Assembly (NCBI GenBank): GCA_047495785.1
Contig: JBLDXI010000002.1
Span: 806,001-870,000, forward strand
From: Lepidodermella squamata
Lineage: Eukaryota; Animalia; Gastrotricha
Direction of reading: 5' to 3'
DNA length: 64,000 nt
Shown: piece by piece, positions 6,515 to 60,665 of the stretch
Position numbering within the stretch: the first letter of the stretch is position 1
Layout: every line of letters begins with the position of its first letter
Program-made: the position numbers and the translations under genes
The notes under the pieces: model-generated
What the model saw: only the letters and a program-made list of their open reading frames with translations
Told to the model about the DNA's origin: nothing
The model's database searches: none

Positions 6515-9500
6515 TCATTTCGCCAGATGCTTCCTACGCATTGTCCGATGGCCGGCATTGTTGAAACGTTTGGCTGGTTTCATTTCGATCTGACCAATTG
6601 ATCCGACCGCATTCGACGGTGCCAGATTTGCAGCAGATGCGCTCAACGCAGCTCCTTAATCGAAATAAATACGGATTATTCTAGATTTTTGGTTGATTTG
6701 ATTTCATACCTATGGCTAGATGAACTTGAGCCACGGAAAATCTGGATATTTTTCGAAATCCCTTAGCAAAGGGATTGTTGTCGATTTTCAGTTTCGTTAT
6801 CTGGAAGTTTTGCCATGGATTAATTTTATAAAAATTATTGTTAAATTACCAGTTGATTTTGGTAAGCAGTGACGGCCATAAATCTTGCCTCCGGAAAATT
6901 GAACGTCCAAACGGTGTTGGCTGGTGGTAGCATTTTCCCGACGCCAAAGAGACCATTCGGCTGAATGCTGACCTGATCAGGTGGACTCAGCTCGATCAAA
7001 TGAATGCGGGGCTCGTATTGATGCATCGACTTCAAAACCACCTATAAAATCAAAATTAAAAAGAATTATACTTGAATCATTCCCAATCAATATTCCAGGG
7101 TTTTATCATGTGGAAAGTTGAGATATAAATGAAGATTGAAAACTCGTTAATTGGTTATTTACAAATTTTCCCATTTTTCAGGATTTCGGATTCCAAACAT
7201 CAATTTAAACAAAATTATTAAAAATTATATTAAATCGAATTATTTATTTAATTTCAGAATTTAGTTGAATTCAAAAGTTGAAAAAGTTGAATTTTTCCGA
7301 ATTTTCAAAAATTTCAAAAAAATTAAATTAAGGTTAAGATTTATTTTTGAATTTAGCACAAAAATGTCAACTAATTTCGCTCAGTTTTTAATTAATAATT
7401 ATTATGGAATATTTTTCCAAGAGAGAAACCCAAAACGTCGCGCAATTTAATTCAATAAGCGCGCAAAGTAAACAATAACGCGCGCAACATAATTTAAGGT
7501 GTCGCGCAGGAGACCGTCGCGCAGAAGAAATTAATCCGTGCGCACTTCACTTCAAAAGCCGCGCATTCGTAATCACAAAGTCGCGCAATAAGATAAATTT
7601 GTCGCAGAGGTAAAACAGAACGTAGCAAACCCAATTTTATCGAAATTTCATCAGCAATCACAACAAATTATTTAAAATTTAAAATTTAAACAAATTAATG
7701 CAAATAATTGTTCCAATTAGAACAGGAGCAACCCGAGCCGCATTTAGAATTCAACAAGAACATTTACGGCCTCGGCCGCCAGTTTTACAGTTTTACAACC
7801 GCACCGTGATTGCGAAGGGGCAGCAGACGTTGGTTAAATTTCAGATCGTGTTTCGACGAAGCCAGGCGTGTCATCAAAAATCCTGGCTTCGACTCGGCGC
7901 ACTTTTGCCAACGTTGCCACAGCTGGAACGTCAACTTATAAAGTTGAATTGTCTCTCGGTGGACGCCCGGGCTTGTTGCGCTTGAAAGCTACAACTAAAT
8001 TAAACTAACTTTCGTCCCGCCGCCATATATAGACCCCATGATATCGACGAATCGATATGTCTTTGGCGAGAAAAACTATGAGAAATCGCCTGTCTCGGAG
8101 CATTTATTGCTCCAATCACGCGCAATCCGCCCAATCAATCCAACACACGCACACATACGCACCCGCTGCGCACCTCGACACGCACCTTGCGCGGCTTAGC
8201 ACTAGCTGTTTACTCGCCGGTTTAGCAACTAGCTGCGTGAAGAGCTACGGACCGTGTCCGGTCATTAAACTGGGTCGCTATAAACGTGCTACCAACAGCT
8301 ACAACAACAAATCAACAGCTACAACTTATCCTAGAATTTTTTTAAGAAATCAGCAAAATGCGATATTATTATTAATTTCAAGTAATTGAATTGAAAAATG
8401 CGTCGACCACTGGGCCGCTATCTTCCATTAAACTATTCGCATAATTCAGTAAAAATAAGTGATCTAGCATCCAATACGAGAAAACATTTTTACGCCGACG
8501 CCCTCCCGTAGCACAGCCATAGTATTCTACGTAGCAACCTCTTCTCTCCTCGCCGCCTCGTTGCCAAAACAATAGGCCCCTATTACCAAGGAAAGCCTGG
8601 GCTTCCTCATACCACCCGGAGAAAACAGGTTGCCAGTTGTTTTTCAACTCACCGTAGCCTTCAAAAATTTCACCTGTTGGTAATTTTACATCATCTGTTC
8701 AAGCCGTTCAAGCTCAATAATCAATTCTTCAACTTCGTCGAGAAATCTCATGTTTCAACGTTGAGAAATAATGAAATAAGGGCATGCTACGTGATTTATA
8801 TTTTGCGCGACTTGGGTTATTATCCTGCGCGACGGGTGTTAATATTCTGCGCGACACATTCTGCTAGTGCGCGACGCTTTTGTTTACTTTGCGCACATCT
8901 GTTTGTTTTGCGCGTTTACTGAATTTATTTGCGCGACGCCTGTCGAAGACCCTTTTTCCAACTTCCAACTTTAATTTTAATGGTGTCTAATTGACGGCAT
9001 ATATAGATTTGATGGGAACCCTAATATTATTTTTTTTTAATTTCAATATTTCAATATTTTTTCTATATTATTTTTGGGTCTTCCTGTTACCGGAACCAAA
9101 TTTACAGTGAGCGGAACCAAATATGCTGTTAGCGGAACCAAATTTTAGAATTTTCTAGTGGCCTGAAATCGTTTTTCGAATATTTATTGCATGCCAAAAT
9201 CGGCCGCAATAGTTCTAGATAATTCACCAGTGAATTCAGCGCAACATTCTCCATAAGACGCAGTGTTCAATTCCGAATTTATGCTTAGCCTTAAATTCTT
9301 AGAAATATTCAAAAAATGACTCTTGGCATATTTCGAGTTTGGTTCCGCAACAAGCAAATTTCGTTCCGCTACAGCATATTTGGTTCCGATACAGCGAATT
9401 TGGTTCCGCTCACTGTAAATTTGGTTCCGCTAAAAGATATTCCCATTATTTTTGGGGAAAAAAGTAATTAATTTTGTCAGCTTACGTGATCGCTGAATTT

Positions 9501-10082
9501 AGCCAAATTTTCGTTATTAGTCAGCTTGATGCGCTCGAACGACAGCAGCCGGTCCATCAAATTGCTGCCACTGATCGGGCATTCAGGGTGGACATAAAAC
9601 TTATTACCGCACATTTCACGGCCGAAATCACTCGCACTCGCACGTTTCGCAAAGCAATTACCCATCGCCGCTTGATTGCCACCACTCGACGAAGCGGCGG
9701 CCGGGTCAAGGGCGGTCCATGACGATTGCAGGTAAGAATATCGAAACCGCTTCCCGCTAGCTGGTACCACCTCGAAGACGATCAGGTAATTCGAGGCTGA
9801 ATTCAGCCCATCGCCGCTGAATTGCACCTGCATTGTCGGAAACATTCGCCGGCCAGCTTTCGTTATAATCATTTCGGTGCCAATTTGCGCGAATTGATGC
9901 CACAATTCCGGCCGGGCTAAATCGCATTTAATGACATCGCTAGCTTTCTGAGTAATTAAATTAAGTGGGGGCGATGATTCATCACGGGATGAGTCATCAT
10001 CAACAGTTATCTCCTGATCTGAATTGTTGCTAACCAGCGATTCGATCATAAAAGCGCGGCAATTTCGCGATAAATTCGCCAT
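6515..10082 (-). CDS. tbx20: T-box transcription factor, Tbx20/H15-like; exons 10082-9486, 7041-6850, 6800-6710, 6654-6515 (last exon tentative)
   Basis: ELWHQFAQIGTEMIITKAGRRMFP, RFRYSYLQSSW, SFERIKLTNNE, SMHQYEPRIH, AVTAYQNQL|ITKLKIDNNPFAKGFR. N-terminal eh1-like AFMIESLV. GT-AG introns are in consistent phase. Confidence 0.85.
7421..8952. mobile_element. Non-autonomous Mutator/foldback-like element in T-box intron 1
   Basis: 9-bp direct repeat TTTTTCCAA at 7412-7420 and 8953-8961. Degenerate inverted ends built from GTCGCGCA / TGCGCGAC subrepeats. Confidence 0.7.
9076..9444. mobile_element. MITE (Mutator-like), GGAACCAAAT family, copy 1
   Basis: 9-bp TSD ATTATTTTT (9067-9075, 9445-9453). 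Inverted arrays of GCGGAACCAAAT / ATTTGGTTCCGC. Related copies at 16.4 kb and 50.6 kb. Confidence 0.8.
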
Positions 10083-24847: not shown

Positions 24848-25612
24848 ATGCAAAGCCGGTTGATTTACGTTGCTTTGGTTTTAAGCCGACAAATAAGTGG
24901 CGGCTCGATGCAGCAACCAGTCCAGCAGTCTTTCTACTTTTCAAATGTTCCCGGAACTGAGTTTCAATGGTACGCGAACGCTCATGAAGTACCAACAATC
25001 GAAAAGACGGTATTAACACCTCAAGCCTATAAATTAGGTAAAAAGCTGTTCATTTCCAAAGTTCCGGACAGCGATCTAGCCCCGATCGAGATTGAGCTGG
25101 GAGAACGGTTTCGTTTTGGCGCTAGAAAGTTGATTTTCGACAGGATGTATGCTGAAGAACAGCAGCGAAAAAAGAACATAGTTTTCTATGTTGGAGTTAC
25201 GCTTCTTTCGCTAGCAATATCAGCCGGGTTCACGGCTTTAACCGTATTTGTCCGAAACAAAATATTCGAGTCGATATACCCTCAACCTCCGGTTGTAACG
25301 CAATCTCTTGACCGTGATTTTCGTTTGAGGTCACTTAGTACGAACAGCCATGGCGGCATTGAAGGAAGGATCGGCGAGGCGGAGGAAGATTACCAGCTGG
25401 CTGGCAGGATTGCTTCGAACTTCGTGGATGCAGATGTCTCAGGAATTACGACAAAACTTCTCAGTGAAGATCAATTCCCAATTGTCAGCAGTTACGTTGA
25501 GCCAAATTATTCTGAAGCTAGTCTGGACACGTTTTTAAACTCTGTTATTATGAACGACCGGAGCTACGATTTGAATGACATCGTTTCTCAAAATAATAAT
25601 CTTTTCTTTTAA
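24848..25612 (+). CDS. Uncharacterised intronless membrane protein, family member B
   Basis: FDRMYAEE, TM IVFYVGVTLLSLAISAGFTALTVFV, GIEGR. Confidence 0.8.
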   Translation: MQSRLIYVALVLSRQISGGSMQQPVQQSFYFSNVPGTEFQWYANAHEVPTIEKTVLTPQAYKLGKKLFISKVPDSDLAPIEIELGERFRFGARKLIFDRMYAEEQQRKKNIVFYVGVTLLSLAISAGFTALTVFVRNKIFESIYPQPPVVTQSLDRDFRLRSLSTNSHGGIEGRIGEAEEDYQLAGRIASNFVDADVSGITTKLLSEDQFPIVSSYVEPNYSEASLDTFLNSVIMNDRSYDLNDIVSQNNNLFF

Positions 25613-25781
25613 TGTAAATCAAATAAAATCAGCATAGCTAGATTTTTACTCCACCCCCCTCTATGTCGATGAGTATTCTTTAAATGACTTTTCTTAGACA
25701 TTAAAGTAAGTTTCAAAAAATCCACCATAAATTATGTAATCTTCATTATTGTTGAACAATTCTTGTTATCGATGATTGACA

Positions 25782-26501
25782 ATGCAAAGCTGCCTCCAGT
25801 GGATTTATATCGCTTTGCTTTTGAGCAGACAATTTCGCCGAGGCTTAGCATTCCAATGGTACACGAACGGTAATGATGTAACTGAAGTCGAAAAATTGGA
25901 ATTGACGCCAGATGTCTATCGTTTGGGTAAGAGGCTATTTCATTCTAAAGTTGCGGACAGCGATCTAACGTTCATCGAGCGTGAGCTGCGAGATCGATTC
26001 TCTATTGACTCGAGAAGGACAGTATTCGACAGGATGTATGCTGAAGAACAGCAGCGAAAAAGGAAAATAGTTTTCTATGTTGGAGTTACGCTTCTTTCCC
26101 TTGCGATCTCGGCTGGGTTCACTGCTTTAACCGTCTTTGTCAGAAACAAAATAGTCGAGTCTATATACCCGCAAACCCCGGTGGTGATACAATTTCCTGA
26201 CCGTGATCTTCGTTTGAAGGCACTCGGCTCAAGCAGACACGCCGGTATTGAAGGACGACTTGGAGACCTGGAGGAAAATAATCGGCTGGTTGGCAGGATT
26301 GCTTCGAACTTCGCGGATGAAGATGTCTCAGGAATTACGACAAAGCTTCTCAATGACGATCAATTCCCAACTGTTAATAGTTATGTGGCATCAAATTATG
26401 TCGGAGCTAGTACGGACACTTTTTTAAACTCTGTTTTTGATAATGACCGGATGTACGACATGGACGACTTTATCTTGCAAAATCGCAGCCTGTTCATTTA
26501 A
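25782..26501 (+). CDS. Uncharacterised intronless membrane protein, family member C
   Basis: Clear paralog of B and D; ATG at 25782. Confidence 0.8.
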   Translation: MQSCLQWIYIALLLSRQFRRGLAFQWYTNGNDVTEVEKLELTPDVYRLGKRLFHSKVADSDLTFIERELRDRFSIDSRRTVFDRMYAEEQQRKRKIVFYVGVTLLSLAISAGFTALTVFVRNKIVESIYPQTPVVIQFPDRDLRLKALGSSRHAGIEGRLGDLEENNRLVGRIASNFADEDVSGITTKLLNDDQFPTVNSYVASNYVGASTDTFLNSVFDNDRMYDMDDFILQNRSLFI

Positions 26502-26723: not shown

Positions 26724-27629
26724 GCACATTTCCCCATCCGCCGGTGTTTCCTCCGCGCGCGCGCTCCTATTGGCTGGGCCTTGTTGCGCAACAACTAAGA
26801 TAATTACAGCCTTCGTGCGCACGGACGAGAGCAAAGACGACTGCGCCCTGCGCTCAGTCAGCGAAGGCTTTCAAGAAAATTAAATTAAGGCAGATTTTGT
26901 TGTCACAAAATTTGACAAAATTTGGATTATCATGTAATTTATTCTTATTTACATATCGATTGAATAGAAAATAGAAAATAGTGAGCGCGCAAAATTCAAA
27001 TTTTACCTAACGAATTGCGAAAGCGCGCACCGTTAGCACGAGCTATTTTCGGTGAATTTGGGGTAATTTCATCAAAATATAGTTTGAGACTCTAACATTT
27101 GATTTTTTCGCGCAACATCGCATTGATTGAAAAATGTGTCTTACCCTTAGAAGTTTGTGCGTTTGAAAAGTTACCGCTCATTATCGGAGCCGCTTATAAT
27201 ATGGGGTGGATGTAAAATTTCCTTAGAATGATCAAAACTCAAGCGCTTCTAAAAATACAGAAAAATTGCGATTTCAAAAAGCTACATAATATAATGATGA
27301 TTCATGATTGTGCGATTTTATTTTGCTTGGAAATATTTTTAAGCGCCCTGTCGATTGTAGGGCATCATTCTTTCTCGCTATATTCTTGATTTGAAATTTT
27401 TCGGAACTTGGTACTAATTGAAAAATGTACTCTCGATGCGCGCGTTTCACTGGACTTGTTCAATTCGGGCTAGCTGACTTGTGGTTTTCTTGTGATTTTG
27501 CAGCGCGCGCGTAGAAAGCTGCAATTATTTGTTGCGCAATAAATGCGCGCGACGTGCGGTTACGCGTAAATTTAACCGACCAATAGGAATGCGCGCGCGG
27601 AGGAAACACCGGCGGATGGGGAAATGTGC
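26724..27629. mobile_element. Non-autonomous Mutator-like element
   Basis: About 50-bp TIR GCACATTTCCCCATCCGCCGGTGTTTCCTCCGCGCGCGC...; 9-bp TSD TTTTTTATG (26715-26723, 27630-27638). Confidence 0.85.
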
Positions 27630-27745
27630 TTTTTTATGATAAATTTACCTTAAACATTCAACTCAAAATAAGTTGCAAAAATGCCACCTTAAAAAATGGA
27701 ATCAGCAATAATAACGGTACAAATTCTTATTATCGATGGTTGACA

Positions 27746-28516
27746 ATGCACAGATTTTTCCATTTCATTAACATCGCTTTGCTGTTGAGCCCACAAATAC
27801 GTCGAGGCATATTACAACCTTCAAGTTCGAAAGAAATCCCTAAAGATCCAAGCATCTTGTTCGAATGGTGGGAGAAAGGTTATGAAACAGACAATATTGA
27901 TTTAATGGTATTGACGCCGCAGACCTATCGTTTAGGAAAGCGGCTATTTCATTCCAACCTTGCGGAAAGCGATCTAACGCCCGCCGATCTTGAGTTTCGA
28001 GAACGAATTCATTTTGGTTCTCGAAAAGTTGTTTTCGATAGGATGTATGCTGAGGAACAGCTTCGAAAGCAGCGAAATAATAAAATAGTGTTCTACGTCG
28101 GAGTTACGCTTCTTTCGCTAGCAATCTCAGCCGGATTCACGGCATTAACCGTATTTGTCAGAAATAAAATAGTCGAGTCGATATACCCTCAAACTCCCGT
28201 TGTAACGCAATCTTTTGACCGTGATCTTCGTTTGAGGTCACTTAGTACGAACAGCCATGGCGGCATTGAAGGAAGAATCGGCGAGACGGAGGAAAATTAC
28301 CTGCTGGTTGGCAGAATTGCTTCGAACTTCGCAGATCACGATGTTTCGGGAATTACGACGAGACTTCTCAATGACGATCAAATGCCGACTATCAGCAGTT
28401 ATGTTGTGCCAAATTTCTCCGAGGTTCTTCACGACAATTTTTTGAGCTTTGTTTTTGCAAATGACCGCAGCTACGATTTTGATGTTTTACAAAATGACTC
28501 TCTGTTTACGTTGTAA
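27746..28516 (+). CDS. Uncharacterised intronless membrane protein, family member D
   Basis: Paralog of B and C; ATG at 27746 by alignment. Confidence 0.8.
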   Translation: MHRFFHFINIALLLSPQIRRGILQPSSSKEIPKDPSILFEWWEKGYETDNIDLMVLTPQTYRLGKRLFHSNLAESDLTPADLEFRERIHFGSRKVVFDRMYAEEQLRKQRNNKIVFYVGVTLLSLAISAGFTALTVFVRNKIVESIYPQTPVVTQSFDRDLRLRSLSTNSHGGIEGRIGETEENYLLVGRIASNFADHDVSGITTRLLNDDQMPTISSYVVPNFSEVLHDNFLSFVFANDRSYDFDVLQNDSLFTL

Positions 28517-29158: not shown

Positions 29159-31629
29159 ATGAGCGGCAAGAAACCGTTTCACGATTGGTACTCCATCCCT
29201 GGCAATGCTCGAAGGGACATTGAGAACATTACCAACGATATCAAGAAGCGTAGTGGCAAGGACGTCTCTAAAAAGTGCCACGACCGAATTTGCAACGGTG
29301 TCTACCAACTGGAAGAAGAGCCTGAATCTTGGCCGGCTGCCCTAACTAAAATCGTGAATTCTCTCGAGGAAATTCCACCTGGTCTGAAGGCTTCGCTGCT
29401 CCGCGACCGTAAATGGACGTCACCAGGCAGTGCTTGGCTATCGTTTCAAGATGCGGTCTCCAAAAAGTTGAATGAAGCCTCGAACGCTGCGAAAGCTTTC
29501 GCTCGCTCTGTTATGGGTTATCTGCGCGATAATCGTGAGAAGAAGGGAGAAGACAATGGAACTCCCTTGGACGAAAAATCAACGCTACGTGAAGAAGATC
29601 TCGCTGAGCCTGATGCCGGAGATAAGGGCGATGTTCAAGCTGAGGAAAAACCTAAGATTTCGGTCCACGTAAACGCGCGCAACAAGTCTGCCGAAGCTTT
29701 TGCCGCCGATGCATCTGCCTCAGCAGATGTCGCTGAGGTGAATGCGCTCAATGCGTCGGCGAAATTCGGGACAGCGAGTGCAACGGCCAATGCTACCGGA
29801 GCCGAAGCCAATGTGTTGAACGCATCGGCCAGTGCCTTGACCGCTCAAGCATCTGCAAGTGCTACTGGCGCATCCTTCAACGCTGGCAATGCTTCAGCCC
29901 AAGCTGGAGCGGTCAAGGTTGGGGCGCATGCAACTGGAGCGTCCGTCAACACCTTCAATGCAACAGCCGAGGCTGGGACTGCTTCATTTCAAGCATCTGC
30001 CCACGGTTTGCAGGTCAATGCTTTCAACGCGTCAGCTCGAGCTGGAACGGCCAGTGCTGCGATCGATGTCGGGCCCTCTGTCAGTTGCTTCAATGCTTCA
30101 GCTTCGGCTGGCTGTGTTAGTGCAAGCTCAAATCCATTGGCCGTCTCTTTCGGAAACGTATCTCTTGGTGTTGGAACTTTCAGCGCATCCCCGGCTATGT
30201 TAAACCCGTTAAACTGGTTTAACATCGGCCTGGGCTTTGGAGCTGGAGGCGGTGGAGGCGGCGGGGGTTCCAGCGGCCAATCCGGCGGTGATAACGCAAG
30301 TGGCGGGGCCAGTGGAGATCCTGGAGCTAGTTCCGGTGGCAATCAAGGTTCCGGACAGAATGGAAACGGAGGAGCTGGTAACTCTGGTAATCAAGGCGAT
30401 GGTAACGTCATTGCTCAATGGATTCGGGCTCAGGAAGAGAGGCTACAGCAGAGTTTCCCCAATCGTCATTATGACGGTAAAGGAAACGTCTACCACAACG
30501 GCAAACTCGTTAAGGTAGCTGGAACTCGAAAAGGGGGCTTAGCTCGACTGCCAGACTACGTTCCTCGCCACACTACCCCGATACCCGGTGAACCAGCTGA
30601 CAACGATACGCCCGACCCCTTAGGGATACCCGGCGATAAAGCTGAGGCGGACAAGGTGCTAAGCAATATGAGGTGTCCTGATGGCTCTCAGGCAGCCGAT
30701 GGCGATGTTAATCCAACGAGTTGTGCGACTTGGGCTCAAGTCAGTTCGACCTGTGCAACAGATTTGCGCATAGTGCAAGGCGTCGATAATTCAAACTTGG
30801 GCAAGGTGCTTACGTCGCAACTGATCCAGCCTGGCACTTTCACAACGGTTGAGATTGCCGAGGGATCCAACCATTTCTTCATTGCTACTGGCCAACCTAA
30901 TGACCAGGTGCTGATAACCAACGCTTGGCAGGACGTTCATGGCATCCGGAATGAGCCTCTTATCCCGCGGGATGAATTCATAAAACACATGGAAACGATG
31001 ACTTCACCGCAAGCGACTGGCGATCAGCGTCAGGAGTCGATGCAGCGATTGTTCAACGTTGAGAAGAAGGATATCGGTGACATGGGGAAGAATCGGCCTC
31101 TTAGAGTGAAGTAAGTTTCCCTGCGCTTCACAATGGTTATATCTCCAATTTTCATATGATTAGAAATGTTTATCACGGCCGAGTTGGAATTCCGTTCGTA
31201 GATCGCCCAGGTGCTAATCGAAAAGTCCCTGGTACTGGCTACACTCCGTACACGAAAAAACCCGTGAATGACGTGGGAGATTTGCCTCCTGTCTATGTGA
31301 AGAATGGCGATAAGAAGAAATCAGGGAAGAAATCGAATTCCAGCCAGAAGCGAGAGCTCAACATCCCTGATGGCGCTCTGGAGCTTGCAACGGCTGCAGC
31401 TGGAGCTGAAGGCTACACTTTTGAAGAGCTTCGTGATGCAGCTCGAAATGTGGCTTCAAACTGGGCGGAAAACGAGGAGCAGGCGGTTGAAGAGCTGGAA
31501 AAGACCGAACTGTGTGGCTTTTGTAAGCCAAAAGGCTCGCCTCACTGCTTGAGCTGCCTTAATGGAAATGGCAGTAAGAAGATTGTCAAGTTGCCCGGTG
31601 ATGGAAACATTCATGGCTTTGGGAGCTGA
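29159..31629 (+). CDS. 805-aa multidomain toxin-like protein (23-aa Ala-rich repeats, Gly linker, papain-fold-like domain, C-terminal CxxC-x7-CxxC); exons 29159-31110, 31164-31629
   Basis: A 53-bp phase-2 GTAAGT...TAG intron joins the two track ORFs. Domain calls come from motifs SCATW and NHFFIATG...LITNAW. Confidence 0.75.
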
Positions 31630-32007: not shown

Positions 32008-32853
32008 ATGCGTTTTCTCCTCGGATACCTTGGGATCTTGTTGCTCCTAGTGCGACGCCGCTCAGCTCAGTCGAGGTATCCAGTTGTTATCAACAAATTT
32101 TCCTATGATTTCTCCGCTGATGCTACTGGCAAGTTGGACCCGGAAATCTATCGGCTCGGTGTTGACTATTACAAGCGCAAACTCCCGCCGAATCATTTCA
32201 CTCCTTTCGAAAGGAAAATAATCAAGCAGCTGGGGGAAGGCGAGAAAAAGAAGATGTTCGAAAGAATGTTCGCTGAAGGCGACGCTGTTGACTATCGCAA
32301 TCCCAACAAGCTAAAAGTTATCACTTTTTATGAACCGCCCAAAGTCCAAACTCCCAAGCCAAACAGTGAGAAAAAATCTCAAGGTGTTTGGCAAAAATTG
32401 AAGAATTTCGCTAAAAATAACTATAAAACGGCCCTGATAATTGTAGGAGTTGTTGCGTTCGCGGCACTTATCTACGCAGGCGTGTCATTATTGAGAATGG
32501 CTTTAAATGACAATCAACAATCGGACGTTAAGAGAAATGACGACATTCGAATAAATGCGGACAGAGAAGCGCGTTTAACCTTGCTGCAAGTCAATTCAGG
32601 GAAAATCGAAGGCAGAAGTTATTACCAGAACGCAGATTACTCTCTACTAGGTCGCCTTCTGGAAACAGCGGACGATCTTAGCGGAAATTCCTTAGATTCA
32701 GACTTAGCCAACCCAGATAATTTTGGTACGATGCAGATCGCGATCCACCCTGACTTGGCAAGCATTTCCTCGGATACTTTTCTCAAAATGGCTAGCCTTA
32801 CAACTTCCGATTATGGTGAATTGTCAACCTCAGATTTTAGCGCGATTCTTTAG
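32008..32853 (+). CDS. Uncharacterised intronless membrane protein, family member E
   Basis: LDPEIYRLG, FERMFAE, central TM, GKIEGR and DTFL motifs shared with A-D. Confidence 0.75.
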   Translation: MRFLLGYLGILLLLVRRRSAQSRYPVVINKFSYDFSADATGKLDPEIYRLGVDYYKRKLPPNHFTPFERKIIKQLGEGEKKKMFERMFAEGDAVDYRNPNKLKVITFYEPPKVQTPKPNSEKKSQGVWQKLKNFAKNNYKTALIIVGVVAFAALIYAGVSLLRMALNDNQQSDVKRNDDIRINADREARLTLLQVNSGKIEGRSYYQNADYSLLGRLLETADDLSGNSLDSDLANPDNFGTMQIAIHPDLASISSDTFLKMASLTTSDYGELSTSDFSAIL

Positions 32854-33029
32854 ATAAATACTGTGTTTGAAGCCAATAAATTTCAATAAATTGCATTTAG
32901 GGTTGACAGAACTCGAAAGAATAAAAAGCGTACCCCTGAATCCTGAAAAGTCCTAAAAACTTGTAAAAACTAGAGTGTGCCAATTTATGTTTAGGGTTCT
33001 AGCGCTAAATTTGAGACTCAAGCACTGGA

Positions 33030-33340
33030 TTTCCCCTGAATATGGCGATAAGAAGAAGGTGTTCGATCGAATGTACGCTGAAGGCAAGTGGCCGGTCTTT
33101 GACCATCAAGATCCCAGCCAGCCCAAAGCGTTCATTGCTCATGGGAAAAATTCGCGCCAAATAGCCCTCAGCCAAATAGCCAGATAAAACCTCCGAGTAT
33201 TATACCGAAATTGAAAATTTTGCCAAAAATCACGGTGAAGCAGCCCTGAAAATTGCAGCAGTGGTTGTAATCGTGGCAGCAATTGCTACAGCCGTGGCAT
33301 TTTATCATCAGATTTTAGCGTCATTCTTTAGAAAATACAC
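33030..33340 (+). pseudogene. Relic of the same membrane family (closest to E)
   Basis: GDKKKVFDRMYAEG followed by a frameshifted TM (ALKIAAVVVIVAAIATAVAFY); no intact ORF. Confidence 0.6.
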
Positions 33341-34429: not shown

Positions 34430-35626
34430 TTATTCGGCAGTATCAGAATCACTAGCCGTTGCGTCATGATCTTCATCCTGGTCCTGTTCACTCATCGACG
34501 TCTCCATTTTAGGCGACTCGTTTACTAAAGGTTTCTCGATTAAAGCCGAATGAAGAATCTCATCCAAGTGTTGAATCACCATTTTAACCGCCTCGGGCTC
34601 TTGTTGCGGCTTGACCGAAAGAAACTTCGCAATAGGAGGGCGAAGGTCGAGTTGCATTAGCTCCTCATCGTTTAAAGCTTGATAAGGCGCACAGGTGCAT
34701 CGAGGAATCCAGTGAACTGCTGTCAGAGGCCAAGTTTGAATTCCTTGTTTCTGGCTAAGCCATGCATGGGCCTCGGCTACAACGCGGTTGATAGTATCCG
34801 CATCAAAGCTCTTCACTTCATTTCGGAACTTCTCCAGATCACAGAGGGCTTTGAACATCGCAATTTCATCTTCAATGCCCAACTTTTCTTTGAAAGAACG
34901 ATGAGCCGCAGCGGCTAGTTTTGATTGGAATGTTTCAGGGCAAGCAGTTCTCGGCTCGAATTCCTTGACGAAAGACTTGAGCTTCTCCTCGTCTTCCGTT
35001 GACAACTTGCCCAGGGCGCGATGGGTGACAATTCTGGCGCAATGAGCTGCGTTTGACATGAAAATTCCGCACAGCTTCTGCGCCTCTCTCGTGTCGTAAT
35101 TCTCGGTTTTAAGGACAGGCGGTAACACTTGACCAGCCTCGCGTTGGAAAAACGCCTTAACCTCATCGAAAAGCCGATTCCTGGAATCAGACGCCGGCTT
35201 CTGCAGCAGCTGGTCAGACGATGACGTGCGTTTCGTCATGTTGATAGGCTGGATGTTGAGCATTGAAGGCTGTCGCTTCTCGCGCATACCGGCTTTGATA
35301 CACTGCTCGAAACGGCACTTCCGGCAACATTTTCGCCACACCTGGCCGCTTATGGTGAAGCTTGACTGAACAGAGGCGTTACACATGCTTTCGTCGTGTT
35401 CCAAAGCGTTCTGCGAGGCAACTTGCCGCAGGTAGAACCGCTTACAGGCCTCGCAGGCCATAACTCCACAGCGCTTCTTGCCATCAGTTTCCGTGAAACA
35501 GACCTGAAAAAAATGATGAAAGAATAATTGATTTGTTATGCCTGGTATCTAAGCAAGTACCTGGCACAATGATCTGCCGATATTTCCAGGATTAGGGCTG
35601 AATTCAGCGAAATTGTTGCCTGCCAT
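34430..35626 (-). CDS. Divergent nuclear-receptor-type zinc-finger protein; exons 35626-35561, 35503-34430
   Basis: CQ|VC...GVMACEACKRFYLR...C...RKCCRKCRFEQCIKAGM. Helical C-terminal region with no clear canonical LBD signature. Confidence 0.8.
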
Positions 35627-42727: not shown

Positions 42728-43207
42728 ATGTTCGAGGAAGGCACAACGCTCGGTTTGTTGAAGGCGACCAGCCTGGCTGGTGCTGGCCTGTTCGCCGGAG
42801 CCGCTTTCAACGCGTCATCCGCCGACGTCCCAGCTCGCAAATCACTCACCCTTGAGCACTCTGTCATGCAATTTCAAGCCTGGTTCAAGAGCACAGCCAT
42901 TCAGCAATCGGTTTGGTCCGTCGCTGGTGGATTAGCCGGTATCGCGGCCGGTAAAATCATGATGAACCAAGGCGATGAGGCCGGCAAGACGTTTCTCGTC
43001 GGTGGTCTAGTGCTTTTCAGCGTTATGCCATGGACTGTTATCGTTATGAAGCCGACGCTGAAGTATGTGCTGGATCCTAAGATTGACAAGAAGTCGAAGC
43101 AAACTGAGGAAATGATGGATCATTGGGCCAACTTGCACCACGTTCGCACTGTCCTGGGCTTTGTCTCACTGGCCATCTTAGTCAAGGCTGCTTTCCTTCA
43201 AAAATAA
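42728..43207 (+). CDS. DUF1772/anthrone-oxygenase-like 4-helix membrane protein, copy 1
   Basis: GLFAG, DVPAR, PWT..M, HWANLHHVRT motifs; intronless. Confidence 0.8.
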   Translation: MFEEGTTLGLLKATSLAGAGLFAGAAFNASSADVPARKSLTLEHSVMQFQAWFKSTAIQQSVWSVAGGLAGIAAGKIMMNQGDEAGKTFLVGGLVLFSVMPWTVIVMKPTLKYVLDPKIDKKSKQTEEMMDHWANLHHVRTVLGFVSLAILVKAAFLQK

Positions 43208-43399
43208 CCATCCAATCGAGCAATATCGATTTTCAGGGAAAGATTCTTTTGATAGTATCAAAAATAATCAGCAAATAAAAAGATGAATTTTCTCTGCAAG
43301 TTATTCAATTTTTCAACAATTATTTTTTCAATTTTTCTAATTTAATTTCGAATTAATTTGATTTATTAGGAAAATATGTTAAAATGTTGAATTAATGAA

Positions 43400-43868
43400 A
43401 TGCTGAATGAAGACACCGTGATTGCTTTGTTGAAGGCGACCAGCCTGGTCTTTTCACCGGAGCTGCTTTTAACATATCACCGCCGACGTGCCAGCTCGAA
43501 AATCGCTCGGAGTTCAGCATTCGATTACGCACTTTCAGGCATGGTTCAACAGCACAGCCATCCAGCAAGCGGTTTGGTCAACTGCCGGAGGCCTGGCTGG
43601 TGTTGCGGCCGGTAAAATCATGCTGAACCACGGCGATGAGGCCGGTAAGCCTTTCATCGTCGGCGGTTTGGTTCTTTTCAGCGTTGTACCATGGACGGGT
43701 ATTGCTATGAAGCCGACGCTGCGGTACGTGTTGGACCCCAAGGTTGACAAAACGTCGAAGCAAACGGAAGAAATGCTGGACCATTGGGCAAATCTGCACC
43801 TTGTTCGCACAGTTCTTGGCTTTGCTTCGCTGGCCATTTTTACGAAGGCTGTTTTCTTCCAAAAATAA
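43400..43868 (+). pseudogene. DUF1772-like copy 2, frameshifted
   Basis: About 10-bp deletion near 43447 and 1-bp deletion near 43480 relative to copies 1 and 3. Confidence 0.75.
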
Positions 43869-44213
43869 CCATTCGATCGAGCAATATCGATTTATCAGGA
43901 TAAAAAATGATTTTTGCCATAGATGATAGTTATCCTGGCTATCAAGAGAATAATCAGTAAATAAAATGATCAGTTTTTCATTTTTTTTCATTTTTTTCAT
44001 TTTTTACTTTTTTACTTTTTGAATTTTTGAATTTTCTACATTTTTGGATACTATTTTTGAATTTTTGAATTTTTCACTTCTTTTAAATGTTGAAATTTTT
44101 GCTTTTTATTTTTCCTATATTATTTCTCAATTTTCCTAATTTAATTTGCGAATTAATCAGACATTTTAGGAATTTATTTTTAAACTTTAAATTCAAATTT
44201 CAAATTTTTGAAA

Positions 44214-44696
44214 ATGTTCAATGAAGATACTACGCTCGCTCTGTTGAAGGCCGCCAGTGTGGCCGGGGCTGGTCTTTTCGCTGGCGCCGCTTTTAACATA
44301 ACAACCGCCGACGTGCCAGCTCGCAAATCACTCGGCCTTGAGCACTCGGTTACGCACTTTCAGGCCTGGTTCAAGAGCACGGCCATCCAGCAATCGGTTT
44401 GGTCGATAGGAGGAGGTTTGGCCGGTATTGCGGCCGGTAGAATTATGCTGAAGCACCAGGGCGATATTGCCGGCAGGCCTTTTCTCCTCGGCGGTTTGGT
44501 TCTGTTCGCCGTTTGCCCATGGACGATTATTGTCATGAAGCCGACCCTGCAGTACGTGCTGGATCCGAAGATTGACAAGACTTCGAAGCAGACTGAGGAA
44601 ATGATGGACCACTGGGCTAATTTGCACCTTGTTCGCACGGTTCTTGGCTGTGTTTCCCTGGCTATCTTAGTCAAGGGTGCCTTCCTCCAAAATTAA
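44214..44696 (+). CDS. DUF1772-like copy 3
   Basis: Intact paralog; ATG at 44214. Confidence 0.8.
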   Translation: MFNEDTTLALLKAASVAGAGLFAGAAFNITTADVPARKSLGLEHSVTHFQAWFKSTAIQQSVWSIGGGLAGIAAGRIMLKHQGDIAGRPFLLGGLVLFAVCPWTIIVMKPTLQYVLDPKIDKTSKQTEEMMDHWANLHLVRTVLGCVSLAILVKGAFLQN

Positions 44697-45589
44697 ACAC
44701 GCGATCAAGCAAGATTAATCTATTAGGAACTGACGTTTGATGTAGATGATAGAATCCTTGGCAATCATCAAGAATAAAATGAGTATATCCTGTGCTGGAT
44801 TTTTCTAACAATTATTTATATATCACTTTGTTGTTCCAAGTGCCATTTCATAAATTCAAGGAACTGATCACGAATTAGGAACTATTTGTTTTTGCACAAA
44901 TTACAACAACTTCTTCGAAAAAGTTTGATTGAAGATCCAAGAGCTGCATTTTGAACTTGGAGCGAACTTGGATGATATCTCCCTGATTGTCGTTGATTTT
45001 CCAGAATCTTATCAGCAATCTGGACCTCCTCACACGACTTCACCCTATGTACTTTTGCGTCACACGTGCTTTAGAAAAAGGTTCAGCGGCATTTGCATTA
45101 TTTAACCTTTTTCCTCAACTTCTTTGGAAATTTCCAGAAAATCAGAAATAATTCTACAGCGGAATTCAACGTTTGACCCGAATTCTGAGTTGGCGAAGTT
45201 TCAGGGTGCCCACAGACAATCGAACGAGGATTTTTCGCCTCATAATTTCTTTTCGAATGTTTTTTTGCTTTTTTGCTTTTTTGCTTATTGTTTTTTTATT
45301 GTATACGGACAATCATAAATAAAAAATATACTCGCGCCTCAAATGTATTTGAAACATGGCCGCAAACGATTTTTTCACAATTCATAATTCATAAAGATCC
45401 TCAACCATTTTGTGCGCGTTTTGCGATGGGAATGCCCCAGCTTCAGCGCTTTTATAGAATTCACATCAGCCAATATAAAACCTACGATTTTCGATAATTA
45501 ATATTCTCTTTCATTTTCCCTTTTGCCTTTTTTGCTAGGAAAAATTTATCCAATTTAAAATTTGGATATTTTCTCTAATTTTATTGAAA

Positions 45590-46071
45590 ATGCTAAATGA
45601 TGACACCATTCTTGCTATGCTGAAGGCGACCAGTCTAACCGGGGCTGGTGTCTTTTCGTCGGAGCGGCTCTTGCTGCCACAGTCGCCGATGCTCCAGCTC
45701 GAAAATCGTTAGGAATCCAACATTCGGTCGCGCAATTTCAGGCCAAGTTCAAACGCGCGGCCATCCAACAGTCGGCTTGTTGCCTAGCTGGAAGTTTGGC
45801 CGGTATTGCGGCTGGTAAAATCATGATGAACAATGGCGATGCGAGCGGCAGGCCGTTTTTTGTCGGCGGTCTAGTTCTTTTCAGCATTGTGCCATGGACG
45901 GTTGTTGTTATGAAGCCGACGTTGAATTACGTGTTGGATCCTAAGATCGACAAAGCTTCGAAGCAAACTGAGGAAATGATGGACCATTGGGCTAATTTGC
46001 ACCTCGTTCGCACTGTTGTTGGCTGTATTTCTCTGGCCATCCTAGCCAAGGCCGTGTTCCTCCAGAAATAA
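45590..46071 (+). pseudogene. DUF1772-like copy 4, frameshifted
   Basis: 2-bp GT insertion near 45650 (GCTGGT-GT-CTTTTC); the rest is open. Confidence 0.75.
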
Positions 46072-46683
46072 ACGCTCGACCGAGTAATATCAATGTAACG
46101 GGAAGAGACCTATTAATTAAAAAAATAATAGCAACCTCAGGAAAAATCTGAATAAAATATAAAATGATATAAAATATGAATATAAAATCATTTCCAAGTT
46201 CAAGGTATCATCCAGACAGAACGATACTTCTTGCTCTTGGGCTAACAATATTTATGTCTTTGATTTCGGCCGGCCAAACCGTGCTACACGCGGAATTAGT
46301 GGGTATTTTTCGGGTTTAAAATTGGGAGCGCATCGTCGTTGCTAACTCCACGCGAGCTAATTTTCAAGGCACGAGTCTTCCCGCATTTTGAGCTTTATAT
46401 TTCAGAATTCTTCCAAATGTTATTTCTCGGAATTAGCGTCGTTAATTTCGCTCTTCATATTTTAATCCATGAATTTTTCTAAAATTTCAATTTTCATTTT
46501 TGCTATTTCGAAACTCAAACGGAAGGATTTTATGGGATTTGTTTCGATAAGAATTCACTCACGGCCTGACCCTTACCAATTTAGCATTTTCCAGGTGTAT
46601 TTATCCTGCATACATTTTTGAGCTTCAATTTTTTATAACATTGAAAAGTTGCTTCTTAGAAAATATTCCTAAATTCAAAAATT

Positions 46684-47178
46684 ATGCTGATTGATGAGGA
46701 CACCTTGCTGCGAGGCCTGCAACTGACCAGCATTGCTGGCAGCGGTCTTTTCGCCGGCTGCGCTACGCACCACTCGTTATGCGATGTTCCGGCCCGAAAA
46801 TCGCTCGGACCAGCTCATTCGATCAGCCAATTTCAAGCCTGGTTCTACACAACTGGCAAACTTCAAATTTCTTACGCTATCATCTCAGCAACTGCGGGCA
46901 TTTGGGCGGGTAAAATTCTGCTAAAATCATCGAAAGAAGCCGCCAAGCCATTTTTCCTCGGTGGCGCCCTGATTCTTGGCATAGTGCCATGGACTGGTAT
47001 TGTGATGAAGAAAACACTGGTTTATTTACTGGACCCGAAGATCGACAAAAATTCCGCGAAAACCGGCGAACTGCTGGACTATTGGGCCAACCTTCACGCT
47101 GTTCGATCGATCCTTGGCTCGTTAGCCTTAATTTCTTTCTGCAAGGGCGCTTTCAACACTTCGAAGCCTTTATTTTAA
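46684..47178 (+). CDS. DUF1772-like copy 5
   Basis: Intact paralog, YWANLHAVRS. Confidence 0.8.
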   Translation: MLIDEDTLLRGLQLTSIAGSGLFAGCATHHSLCDVPARKSLGPAHSISQFQAWFYTTGKLQISYAIISATAGIWAGKILLKSSKEAAKPFFLGGALILGIVPWTGIVMKKTLVYLLDPKIDKNSAKTGELLDYWANLHAVRSILGSLALISFCKGAFNTSKPLF

Positions 47179-48138
47179 CAGACAACACTCTGCCTATATC
47201 GCCTAAGCTCGATGAAATTTTCCTTCTGAACTAACCATTGTATGATATTTCGATTTTGATTAAAATTAATATAGGTGAAATTACGGCTGTTTAAATCAGG
47301 GCAAAATATGCAATTTAAGTTCTCCAATAATCACTGATCAGTAATAAGAAAATCAAGTCTTTTTGCGCCACTTTTTTGCCTCGATTTTCAGCAATCAAAA
47401 TCGAAGATTACTTTTCCCCTCTGTATCGACCAAAAGCTCGTTTTTTTGACCCAGACATGCTAGGAAAAAAGGATCTAGAACGCTAAATCATTCTTGCATT
47501 GGGAATAATTATTGGAAATTATGGAAATTATTATAATATATATTATATTATATATATATATTATATTATATACGATAATTAAAAATCCATCTTAAAATGT
47601 TTCCACCTTGAATTCTCCTTAAAATCTCTCAAGGCAATTTAACGTGGATTTGTTATCATTTAACCTCGATTAGGCCTCGAACCAGCTTTTATCGCCTTTA
47701 TCGGCCGAGTTTTGTCTAAAATCGTAAGTTTTGACCTCAAAAACACGTGTTGACCTATTTTTATAATGAATCGTAGCAATAAACGTAGCTAGCTAAAAGT
47801 AGGTCACGGCTAAAATGCTGAATAATTAGTAACCCCATTTCGATATTTCGCTTGCCCTCTTCTCTAGGAAAAATATCCGAAAAGGAGAGTTGTAGCTCAA
47901 AATTTAGGAGTAATTTTTTACGATGAAAGGTTTTATACCAATATTTTAGATATTTCCGAGATCCCTTCCAGAATACTTCTAATGCCGCACGATTACACAT
48001 CTACAACTTTCAAAATTCTTCAACGGAAATCATAGACATAATTTAGAATTTAGGATTATATGTCTACGACGGCAATTTACGGAATGTCATTTTTTATGTA
48101 GGTAGGATTGCTTTTTATCCTAACGAAACCTCTTATCC

Positions 48139-48633
48139 ATGTTTATCGATGAGGAAACGCTGCTCAAAGGTCTACAACTGACCAGCATTGTAGGATCGGG
48201 GCTATTCGCCGGCTGCGCCTGCCATCACACGCTGTGCGATGTTCCAGCTCGAAAATCACTCGGAACACCGCATTCGATCAGCCAGCTACAAGCCTGGTTC
48301 TACACAACTGGCAAGCTTCAAGTTTTCTACGTTTTCACCTCAGCCACTGCCGGTTTATGGGCGGGTAAAATTCTGCTGAAATCATCAAAACAAGCCGCTA
48401 AGCCGTTCTTCCTTGGCGGTGCTTTAATTTTTGCCACTGTGCCATGGACTGGTTTTATGATGCGGAATACCGTGCATTATCTGATGGACCCGAAAGTCGA
48501 TAAAAATTCCGCGAAAACCGGCGAACTACTGGATTATTGGGGCAATCTCAACGCTGTTCGAGCGCTTCTCAGCTCGCTGGCCTTGATTGTGTTCTGCAAG
48601 GGCGCTTTCGGTACCTCAAAGCCCCTGATTTAA
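48139..48633 (+). CDS. DUF1772-like copy 6
   Basis: Intact paralog, YWGNLNAVRA. Confidence 0.8.
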   Translation: MFIDEETLLKGLQLTSIVGSGLFAGCACHHTLCDVPARKSLGTPHSISQLQAWFYTTGKLQVFYVFTSATAGLWAGKILLKSSKQAAKPFFLGGALIFATVPWTGFMMRNTVHYLMDPKVDKNSAKTGELLDYWGNLNAVRALLSSLALIVFCKGAFGTSKPLI

Positions 48634-49498
48634 AACATTAAAATTTCTCTTATGAAGTAAAAATCGAAAAATCGCTTGTCCTATAATTTTGACTCTTCTG
48701 TCGAAAAATTCTAATCACGCCACTGTAATTTTACATAAAAATTGCAGATAAATTCAAAAAATTTATATAGGGCTCAACAAAAATCACTTAAGTCTCAGTT
48801 AATTGATTTTTTCAATAATTCGATTATCGATTATCGATTATCGGAAAAAAGACCAATATTAGACAACAAAGTATTGAAAAAACGAGATTTTGCTAAAATT
48901 TAAGATTTTCAGTTTTACTATCCTGGTGTGTAAAATAAGCGGAATTTTCAGGTAAATGTCGTCGGAATTGAAGAAATTGGCAAAAATTTCGAAAAAATGT
49001 CTTCTCCAAACCGGTTCATCCTAATTTTCTGCCAATTTATTTCTAGAGGTTTCAAGGAACGGGAAATACTATGGCAACATCAATTTGCTGCAATAATTTA
49101 ATAATTACTTGAAATTCGAAAAAAATTGAAATTTCTCCGAATTCGAAAAATGGTAAAAGCCATTCAAGCGCCTTACCAGAATTAGTAGGAATCTGTCAAA
49201 AATTTATTTAAAAAAAAACATCACTTGGCACTTCATCTCGCTATTTTATTAGGCTTACGATTTCTTTAATTAAATCGGTCAATTTCCATAACACTAAAAA
49301 TTAGCGTAACAAAGTGGGGTCGCATTATTATTGCGCAACAAGTCGAATAAAGAGGTCAGAGTTGCATAATATTTGGACTCATTAGACAGAAAAATCTCGC
49401 TTTCACTAATCATTCATTTGAATTCGATTCCTCATTTAAAAAATTTAAAATTTATTTTCCTGAATTTTTAGAACATTTTAAATTTGAAAACCGTGAAA

Positions 49499-49993
49499 AT
49501 GATGAACGACGATACGTTATTTCGCGTCCTGAAGCTGACCAGCATTGGCGGAGCGGCGCTTTTCACCGGTCAGGCAATCAATACGGCGCTAGCTGATGCT
49601 CCGGCCCGCAAATCGCTCGGAACAACGCATTCGATCAACCAGTTCCAGGCGTGGTTCAAAAGCACGGCGAAGATGGAACTCGGCCTGACGCTGATTTCTG
49701 GCACTGCCGGTCTGTGGGCTGGCAACATTTTGATGAAAACCTCGAAAGAACACGCACAGCCGTTTTTCCTCGGCGGCATTTTGATCCTAAGCACGCTGCC
49801 GTGGACTGGCGTTGCGATGAAGCGAACGATTGTCTATTTGATGGATCCGAAAGTCGACAAGAATTCAACGCAAACCACCGAAATGCTCGACCACTGGGCC
49901 AAGTTGCATGGCGTTAAAACTCTGCTAGGCGCCCTGGCCTTGGTTGTTCTCTGCAAGGGCGCCTTCGCCCTGCCCCTGGTCATCCGGAAATGA
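49499..49993 (+). CDS. DUF1772-like copy 7
   Basis: Intact paralog, HWAKLHGVKT; ATG at 49499. Confidence 0.8.
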   Translation: MMNDDTLFRVLKLTSIGGAALFTGQAINTALADAPARKSLGTTHSINQFQAWFKSTAKMELGLTLISGTAGLWAGNILMKTSKEHAQPFFLGGILILSTLPWTGVAMKRTIVYLMDPKVDKNSTQTTEMLDHWAKLHGVKTLLGALALVVLCKGAFALPLVIRK

Positions 49994-50609
49994 AATGAAC
50001 TTGGCCTCGATTTTTAATAATTTTTCTCCAGTGCTGATTTAAGATCAAGTCTCTTTCTATTCATACGGATGCGCTTTAGAGGCAATTTCCTTTCGAAATC
50101 GGGACTTTTTTGTATTAAAAATTTGTAAAAAAAAATCAGCCTATCGATATGAAATCTAATAAAATTCGCGATCGATGTTGTATTTTTTGGAGTATTTTTG
50201 TGTTTATGATGCAACTGAACTTAACTTTCTGGTAAATCGATTGAACTGAACAAGGAAGTTTTAGGCTTTAGGCATAAGAATCGGTTTAAACTTCAGGCTC
50301 GTGGCGACGAGATTTCAAGCCCAACGATAAATCATTTGAACGATATCATAGGTCATCGATAGGTATCTGGTTGTGGCTATTGAGCTATTCGCTTCTTCAA
50401 CAAGTAAAAACGCTATTTCTTCATGGTTCAAAAATTATTATTATCTGAATTTTCGGACACAAATCCGAATTATATTTTCGAATTATTTCAATTTTCCATT
50501 TCGAATAATTTCTGCGCGATTTATTTGCGATGACCTGGTTTTTCGTCTTTTTCCAGGTCGTTTAGCATTCGTCTACACCATGGCTTCGACCTTATTATTT
50601 TCCTTATGA

Positions 50610-51090
50610 AAATTACTTTTAGAGGAGCCGAATTTGCCTGTTGTGGAACCAACAATTTTGGCATATAACGGAAACCTATTTATTAAGTGCCATTTTCGAA
50701 TAATTTCTTTTAAATTACGACTGCGCCGTTTCTGAAAGTGGGGAAGAGACCTTAAGCTGAAATTCACAGCGAATTTTACCGTAATTATTTGACCGTAGCG
50801 GAACCCAATTTTGGAATTTTCAATGGGCCTGAAACCACTTTTCGAATTTTCGAAGGATGTCATTGATTGATCAGCATAATTTGAAATAAATCATCTTCAA
50901 ATTCAGCGTAAAATTCTGTATAAGACGCATTCGTCACAGTAGAATTCACAATTGTCCTCAATTTCGTAGAAATATTCGAAAATCGACCTTTTGTCTATCT
51001 AAAATTAGATTCCGCAACTTGCAGATATGGTTCCGCTACAGTCAAATTTGGTACAGCAACAGGCAAATTTGGTTCCTCTAAAAGATATTC
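50610..51090. mobile_element. MITE, GGAACCAAAT family, older copy (ends approximate)
   Basis: Inverted ends TTTTAGAGGAGCCGAATTTGCCTGTTG / CAACAGGCAAATTTGGTTCCTCTAAAA; core homologous to 9076-9444. Confidence 0.65.
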
Positions 51091-51679
51091 TGATTATTTA
51101 TATGCTCTTGTGAATAATACGTGAAATTCCCAAAAATTCAGAAAACGCATTTTTTGGCTAAAATTAATTATTTATTTTGCTCAATTGCTCAATTGCTCAA
51201 TTGACATAGAACCATATTTTATTGTTATAAACAACAAAAACCCGCTGTTATTTATAAATAACAGTTGCCATAACGACACTGGAGTAACTAGAATTTCTTT
51301 GGATATGTGTTTTAAGGTTTAGGATTATTTCATTTAACAGGTTCGTAGGGTTCAACAACAGGTAATTTTGGTTCCGCTAAAAGTAAGATCGGTTATTTGA
51401 TACAATAAATTTCATAAATTCCTCTGCGGTCGAAATGATGATGTAGTCGAATTGCAAGATTACCTGAGAAAAAACGAAAAGACACTTCATTTTACAAATA
51501 AATCACGCAACAATGGTATACTTTTGGCACAATATGTTGCGCAACATACAAATTAAATGTTCAAAAATCGATATTTCACAAAATTCTTCGTTTTTAATTT
51601 TAATTTCAATTTTTCTTCCAGCATCAATAGGTACCTCTATTCCCCAAACTGTTTTGTTTCATTAGATTGTTCCATTATT

Positions 51680-60333: not shown

Positions 60334-60665
60334 TAAGTAGCTATGGGGCCTTCGCTTTCAGGTGCGATTTGTTACCGGGATGCCTCATCAGAAATCTGAA
60401 ACAGTACGAAAGCAAAAATTCATCATTTAACTGCATTATTTATTCACGCGGCAAGGCGACAGGGATGACAAAAAGAAGCGTTTGATTCCATGATTGCAAG
60501 GAGAAAAGTTTCACTTTTTCCAGCAATAATTGAGTATGAACAATAAAAAGGATTATGATTTATGAGAGGAATTAGGGTTTAAAGAATAAAAATATCTCGG
60601 GCGAAAGCACATAATACAAGTCTCTTCCCTTGTAATGTAAACAGAGCAGCCATCGCTGAAATTAT

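Follow-up and report, generated by a model that had tools for sequence, protein, structure and literature searches.

We describe here a gene at positions 29159-31629 of a 64,000-nucleotide stretch of the genome of the gastrotrich Lepidodermella squamata (contig JBLDXI010000002.1, positions 806,001 to 870,000, forward strand; hereafter the window), whose product appears to carry an internal papain-like domain. On its reading frames and splice junction, the locus is an intact, resident, two-exon animal gene encoding a protein of about 805 residues. The gene belongs to a small family, found so far only in eukaryotes, that has neither a name nor a profile. Our preferred interpretation, to which we give somewhat better than even credence, is that the product would be a cytosolic, minimal papain-like thiol enzyme (a peptidase, isopeptidase or deamidase) tethered through a Gly-rich linker to a repeat rod that bears a head at one end, with a metal-binding tail beyond the enzyme. 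The evidence that carries this interpretation is a conserved Cys, His and polar residue in papain-type order, their placement in a predicted structure, and a list of fold neighbours that is almost wholly papain-like. The alternatives weighed below are that the domain is not an enzyme, that the locus is decaying, and that the protein is a domesticated toxin.

Conserved residues and predicted fold of the compact domain

The compact domain contains three positions that recall a papain-type catalytic triad in order and character. First of all, Cys522, the candidate nucleophile, is the sole conserved Cys of the domain and is kept in 9/9 relatives that cover the column. Second, His572, the candidate general base, lies 50 residues further on and is present in all ten sequences; the alignment has a mean column identity of 26% and five invariant columns, of which this is one. 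Third, Asn588 follows the His by 16 residues in a column that is always polar. The initial annotation had placed the three residues at 30722, 30872 and 30920 with the same 50- and 16-residue spacings, which is exact; it had also made its proposal depend on the conservation of all three in homologues, and here the Cys and the His stand whereas Asn588 itself does not, its column being occupied by Asn, His, Asp or Gln. The third residue of papain-like enzymes varies among polar residues in the same way, and a column of this kind is what a papain-type triad would lead one to expect at its third position. Other fixed features of this region are a DPxGIP motif ahead of the domain, an H-x-F-x-x-T-G strand, a W-Q pair, a near-invariant His594 and an invariant Asn598.

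A structure predicted from the single sequence of the domain reached a predicted local distance difference test (pLDDT) score of 45, and a model based on an alignment of eight sequences was used instead (mean pLDDT 65, core 77-91). In the alignment-based model, Cys522 is the second residue of helix 102-113, at its N-terminal end, His572 lies in strand 151-160, and Asn588 ends strand 164-169, which is the antiparallel neighbour of the His strand, so placed that the Asn is roughly opposite the His. When this model was compared with solved structures in the PDB using Foldseek, at least 22 of the best 25 matches were proteins that, from their entry titles and known properties, we take to be papain-like. 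The top matches include AvrPphB (probability 0.87), phytochelatin synthase, LegA15, Cif/CHBP, the Josephin protein BpJOS, MCF, a papain-like toxin, the C39 peptidase domain of ComA and tegument-like deubiquitinases, with calpain, RavD, vasohibin and AdPLA lower down. Among predicted viral structures (BFVD), the best matches are orphan proteins of giant viruses that infect protists, 145-177 residues long, with E-values from 1.2e-3 and template modelling (TM) scores to the target of 0.46-0.58. The likeness to minimal papain-fold effectors, including Cif, that had been suggested from the sequence agrees with this list, in which the best solved-structure neighbours are minimal papain-like enzymes with Cif among them. 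As to papain-fold geometry, which the initial annotation had proposed to check by this route, the secondary-structure layout is of papain type and the list of matches is one-sided, but no solved-structure match has a significant E-value. Taken together, the model and the Foldseek list make a good, though not a conclusive, case for a minimal fold of the papain type.

A number of observations weigh against this reading. The model has a modest mean pLDDT and only eight sequences went into it; the best solved-structure match has an E-value of 0.1 with TM-scores in the range 0.2-0.33, so that none reaches E <= 0.001; and the alignment yields no candidate for an oxyanion hole. Sequence searches against solved structures, papain included, with the protein and with two family profiles gave no papain-type match at E <= 10 and only low-complexity noise. 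The gapless alignment to papain put forward in the initial annotation thus has no counterpart in these searches. Searches of Pfam, NCBIfam, PADLOC and PHROGs with exon 1, exon 2 and the relatives gave nothing beyond chance, and Pfam Peptidase_C1 in particular has no match at E <= 1 in the window protein or in any of the 10 family members. A 37-residue match of one rotifer protein to ZorE/HNH (E 0.004) is absent from all other members and was rejected as chance level. Conversely, the expectation that the protein would match no known housekeeping family agrees with these same searches. Finally, His594 and Asn598 could be part of a different active site.

Several of these points are also what might be seen if the domain were not a thiol enzyme at all, its conserved Cys, His and polar residues binding a metal or serving a structural role, and its papain-like matches being an artefact of a mediocre model. 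That the E-values of all PDB matches are at least 0.1, that the conserved His594 and Asn598 lie close by, and that the best matches in the viral library are uncharacterised giant-virus proteins would all fit such a case. We nevertheless consider it unlikely: position 588 can be Asn or Gln, neither of which coordinates metals well; a single conserved Cys that opens a helix, followed some 50 residues on by a His in a strand, is the papain-like signature; and the enrichment of papain-like proteins among the top matches is far above what we estimate to be their share of the PDB.

Gene model and protein architecture

The gene is made up of an ATG-started open reading frame (ORF) of 651 residues (29159-31114) and a further ORF extending to 31629. 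A donor GTAAGT begins at 31111 and an acceptor AG stands at 31162-31163, and once the 53 nucleotides between exons are excised, the frame continues through a Lys codon split by the intron (Table 1). The two ORFs correspond to consecutive parts of single rotifer-labelled proteins, namely residues 347-554 and then 566-709 of P0001, and residues 72-284 and then 297-504 of P0002. The intron is thus supported by this collinearity together with consensus splice sites. Exons 1 and 2 were searched separately, and reading across the junction was confined to the three bases of the split codon. Relatives (an 818-residue metagenome protein, the Ectocarpus protein and the Rotaria copy) are continuous across the intron site, and the intron is therefore not common to them. 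In the same window, the nuclear-receptor gene has an intron of 57 nucleotides just upstream of its zinc-finger exon, so that an intron of 53 nucleotides is ordinary in this DNA.

The uninterrupted relatives could also be taken to mean that the 53-nucleotide interval is a frameshifting lesion in a decaying or mis-joined locus, leaving a pseudogene or two separate ORFs. This is very improbable, since GTAAGT lies exactly at the end of the exon 1 homology and the AG exactly where the homology of the tail restarts in the other frame, neither ORF has any other interruption or has lost a residue that is invariant in the family, and a similarly short intron exists in the neighbouring gene. The description of the locus as an intron-containing animal gene, made in the initial annotation, is accordingly upheld by the ORFs, the splice sites and the T-box and nuclear-receptor exons of the window.

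Table 1. Features of the gene and of the Anthrone_oxy-type array, in window coordinates
Feature	Position	Strand	Description and basis
Exon 1	29159..31110	+	650 codons plus 2 bases of a split Lys codon; ORF list, junction, homology along whole length to relatives
Intron	31111..31163	+	53 nucleotides, GTAAGT..TTAG; in-frame stop of exon 1 inside donor
Exon 2	31164..31629	+	ends with TGA stop 31627-31629
N-terminal conserved region, residues 1-175	29159..29683	+	hydrophilic; no signal peptide, no Pfam match
About seven 23-residue Asn/Ala/Ser/Gly repeats and conserved closing motif, residues 182-362	29702..30244	+	lag-23 autocorrelation
Gly/Ser/Asn-rich low-complexity linker, residues 361-419	30239..30415	+	composition; matching linker in relatives
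Conserved short helix and beta-hairpin, then disordered spacer, residues 420-485	30416..30613	+	alignment; model
Compact predicted papain-like domain, residues 486-636	30614..31066	+	conserved DPxGIP motif through last helices
Cys522 codon, candidate nucleophile	30722..30724	+	9/9 relatives covering column; model residue 103
His572 codon, candidate general base	30872..30874	+	10/10; model residue 153, strand 151-160
Asn588 codon, candidate third polar residue	30920..30922	+	column N2/H6/D1/Q1; model residue 169
Four-Cys knuckle CxxC-x7-CxxC	31513..31557	+	4 Cys invariant in four tails aligned; no Pfam match
Conserved extreme C-terminal motif	31600..31626	+	common to P0001, P0002 and P0005; few residues ahead of stop
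Anthrone_oxy-type gene 1	42728-43207	+	Pfam PF08592
Anthrone_oxy-type gene 2	44208-44696	+	Pfam PF08592
Anthrone_oxy-type gene 3	46684-47178	+	Pfam PF08592
Anthrone_oxy-type gene 4	48139-48633	+	Pfam PF08592
Anthrone_oxy-type gene 5	49484-49993	+	Pfam PF08592
Anthrone_oxy-type gene 6	51557-52186	+	Pfam PF08592
Anthrone_oxy-type gene 7	52784-53281	+	Pfam PF08592

The layout that had been read from the sequence, with Ala-rich repeats, a long Gly/Ser/Asn linker and a CxxC-x7-CxxC tail on a protein lacking a signal peptide, holds in each of these respects. The hydropathy of the protein reveals neither a signal peptide nor a membrane segment, the first 30 residues having a mean Kyte-Doolittle value of -1.21 and the highest 19-residue average being 1.01. 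The N-terminal region shares 29-31% identity with the N-termini of the family proteins P0005 and P0008 (E 1e-12 to 1e-16). The repeats that follow are rich in Ala, Ser and Asn and are truly periodic: identity at a lag of 23 residues is 0.35 in the window protein (z 8.8 against shuffles), and the same lag stands out in P0005 (z 15.8), in the Ectocarpus ORF (8.4) and in P0008 (4.8). Four copies of the repeat in the DNA are spaced 66-69 nucleotides apart. Tandem Repeats Finder picks up almost nothing in this region, and the repeats are thus old. They are presumed to form a scaffold of the beta-solenoid type. An N-x-S/T pattern within the repeats was considered as a set of glycosylation sites and rejected, because the protein lacks a signal peptide and the pattern is largely missing from the Ectocarpus repeats.

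Beyond the linker (residues 361-419), the model of the 420-485 stretch contains a helix (2-13) and strands 17-19, 25-27 and 30-33, after which pLDDT falls below 50. The compact domain is internal, with about 170 residues following it. The four-Cys knuckle near the C-terminus (31513-31557), all four Cys of which are kept in relatives, is presumed to bind a metal.

Relatives and distribution

An exhaustive HMMER search with residues 441-651 against 1.84 billion representatives (50%-identity clustering) returned only seven clusters, with E-values from 2.6e-23 to 4.5e-6 and 29-39% identity. Their labels are the bdelloid rotifers Didymodactylos carnosus and Rotaria magnacalcarata, Ectocarpus sp., a EukProt transcriptome 'Hpha', one JGI metagenome contig and two Logan assemblies, and all labelled matches are eukaryotic. 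The full-length and near-full-length relatives share one and the same order of parts, consisting of the head, the 23-residue repeats with their closing motif, a Gly run, the hairpin, the compact domain, a spacer, the four-Cys knuckle and the C-terminal motif. The metagenome relative, of 818 residues, is a single ORF, and the Rotaria copy is likewise without interruption at the intron site. The rotifer-labelled contigs are short (3-7 kb) and bear only this gene, so that contamination is possible.

In the Ectocarpus record CAXNAM020000784.1, the whole layout is contained in one uninterrupted ORF of 858 residues (L002:8435-11011). The record itself annotates only a partial gene of 249 residues, to which it assigns an 'intron', and a UBA-domain gene model lying upstream overlaps the front of the ORF; the annotation of the family gene in this record is probably a mis-annotation. 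In two Logan loci (L005 and L006, from SRR28720669 and SRR28720670), the family gene is found in separate called ORFs, with the match to the tail in another frame, and the gene in these short contigs is either interrupted or spliced.

Outside these clusters, a pattern search and tblastn over 185,579 bacterial and archaeal genomes revealed no relative, nor did searches of plasmids and phages, a scan of IMG/VR viral contigs by sequence, or two metagenome scans of JGI contigs, one with a domain pattern and one with a tail pattern. Word-indexed protein searches with residues 441-651 and with residues 1-175 were both empty, and the latter result carries little weight because the method needs shared words. 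A word-indexed profile search was flooded by low-complexity words, had only two already-known members among the matches listed, and is little informative.

Genomic setting

The window is animal DNA, as seen from a T-box exon (9477-10082, minus strand), a nuclear-receptor zinc-finger exon (34430-35461, minus strand) and an ORF with an N-terminal ubiquitin fold (57496-58302, plus strand). The content of G and C at third codon positions (GC3) in the gene is 0.48-0.54, like that of host genes in the window, and no convincing terminal repeats were found around it. The gene thus appears to be a settled resident rather than a recent insertion. A mobile-element reading was considered and dropped after the search for terminal repeats around the gene found none that convinced. 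The window holds no paralogue of the gene.

On both sides of the gene lies a tandem family of unannotated single-pass membrane proteins (24848-25612, 25776-26501, 27626-28516 and 32008-32853, plus strand, with a fragment at 32975-33187). Each has one hydrophobic segment; three copies are 61-62% identical and the fourth is distant (~25%). The family has no Pfam match, and it is absent beside the relatives in loci L001-L003.

Further downstream (42728-53281, plus strand), seven tandem single-ORF genes match Pfam Anthrone_oxy (PF08592) with E-values from 1e-8 to 1e-11 (Table 1). This family is mostly fungal and bacterial, and the array in an animal genome may thus be an acquired gene family. In three stretches of the window (1651-3463, 4953-6109 and 60662-61666), long ORFs overlap on both strands where GC is elevated and the AT skew is strong; such stretches probably consist of low-complexity or repeat sequence rather than genes.

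Possible mode of action

We can now outline how a protein of this architecture might work, keeping in mind that some of the steps are speculative. The working part would be the minimal papain-like domain, with Cys522 at the start of a helix, His572 on a strand and the polar residue 588 on the next strand, and the domain would be expected to cut or deamidate a protein substrate. This substrate could be another cytosolic protein, possibly ubiquitin-like, or the protein's own flexible linkers; ubiquitin-like targets and self-processing are both plausible, because many of the fold neighbours do one or the other. The 23-residue repeats would probably stack into a rigid rod of the beta-solenoid type, which, with the N-terminal region, would serve to place the protein or bring about its assembly; the Gly-rich linker would tether the enzyme domain; and the four-Cys knuckle would probably bind a metal and serve in recognition. 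With no signal peptide or membrane segment, the protein is likely to be cytosolic.

The same layout had been interpreted, in the initial annotation, as a delivery module joined to a protease or deamidase payload, possibly a domesticated toxin or an immune effector. In its fuller form, this would be a domesticated, polymorphic-toxin-like or conflict effector, in which the N-terminal region, with the repeats, serves to deliver or present the protein and the papain-like domain is a toxic payload or releasing peptidase, the gene having been acquired horizontally for a role in immunity or as a selfish element. The distribution is indeed patchy, with rotifer labels, a brown alga, a protist transcriptome and environmental samples making up seven clusters among 1.84 billion; AvrPphB, Cif, MCF and 9l5u, which are among the fold neighbours, are injected effectors or toxins; the succession of repeats, linker and internal papain-like domain recalls the releasing-peptidase template (PMC3482391); and the same window holds tandem arrays of possibly acquired genes. 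However, the protein lacks a signal peptide, Pfam, NCBIfam and PADLOC recognise no trafficking or secretion domain in it, and its repeats do not match RHS or haemagglutinin profiles. Every full-length or near-full-length relative carries the same compact domain and tail, which speaks against payload swapping, if weakly, as the searches were seeded with the domain itself; the empty search with residues 1-175 adds little. Furthermore, no partner gene is found, as no neighbour is common to the loci of the relatives and the flanking family of the window is absent from L001-L003; no bacterial, archaeal, plasmid, phage or viral-contig relatives were found; and the GC3 of the gene is host-like. We see in the present evidence no sign of a toxin-delivery system, judge a domesticated effector to be improbable, and set the dramatic interpretation aside in favour of the cytosolic thiol enzyme.

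A bolder version of the enzyme interpretation deserves mention, even though we regard it as a long shot. The gene could represent a eukaryote-restricted module that moves horizontally among animals, brown algae and protists, possibly by way of giant viruses carrying the bare domain, and in which stacking or polymerisation of the repeat rod would switch on the tethered enzyme. If this were true, it would be an assembly-activated protease of a new kind, for cell-autonomous defence or genetic conflict.

Comparison with known systems

The product of this gene can be compared with several known systems, starting with the polymorphic toxins of bacteria. These combine trafficking domains, RHS or haemagglutinin repeats, releasing peptidases, variable C-terminal toxins and adjacent immunity genes (PMC3482391). 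The linear order of a front end, repeats and a papain-like domain is similar in the two, and some polymorphic toxins use internal papain-like releasing peptidases (PMC3482391). On the other hand, the trafficking domain, the RHS or haemagglutinin repeats, the variable C-terminus, the immunity gene and the prokaryotic relatives are not seen here.

Among solved structures, the closest neighbour is AvrPphB (1ukf; E 0.1 over 106 columns), and MCF effectors are also within the top 25. AvrPphB/YopT-type (C58) and MCF domains likewise have a Cys, a His and then an acidic or polar residue, and both types of enzyme are known to self-process. They differ in being bacterial secreted effectors, whereas the present protein is eukaryotic, has no secretion signal and has no sequence or Pfam match to them, and its spacing of 50 residues between Cys and His is much shorter than in either. 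AvrPphB is among the papain-like toxins considered in PMC3482391.

Cif/CHBP proteins appear at ranks 7, 8, 19, 20 and 35 of the Foldseek list, with TM-scores of 0.27-0.33 and E-values of 0.3-0.8, which are not significant. Theirs is a minimal version of the papain-like fold, in which Cys and His are close in sequence and the third residue comes some 16-20 positions after the His. The family described here has no match to Pfam CIF, the Gln typical of Cif is found at position 588 in only one of 10 members, and Cif proteins are bacterial type III effectors, unlike this eukaryotic gene product. Papain itself (C1) has the same order of catalytic residues and the same 16-residue spacing between His and Asn (His159-Asn175 in papain numbering). 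Its Cys and His, on the other hand, are ~134 residues apart, as against 50 here, the present protein lacks a signal peptide and propeptide, and the top 50 fold matches include no C1 entry.

The best structural matches overall are the giant-virus proteins of Klosneuvirus (A0A1V0SJV5), Powai lake megavirus (A0A167R3C0) and Pithovirus (A0A481YQZ8), with E-values from 1.2e-3 to 7.5e-3 and probabilities of 0.99-1.00. These are single-domain proteins without the repeats and the tail, 13-16% identical in sequence, and they suggest where the bare domain might also circulate. In comparison with all of these systems, the predicted fold class is known, and the architecture and distribution appear to be new. 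If the prediction holds, the family would be a previously unnamed branch of the papain-like superfamily, one without a sequence match in Pfam, NCBIfam or solved structures. Its scattered distribution raises the question of gene movement between eukaryotes, and its unusual architecture is fixed and shared across a distance as great as that between an animal and a brown alga.

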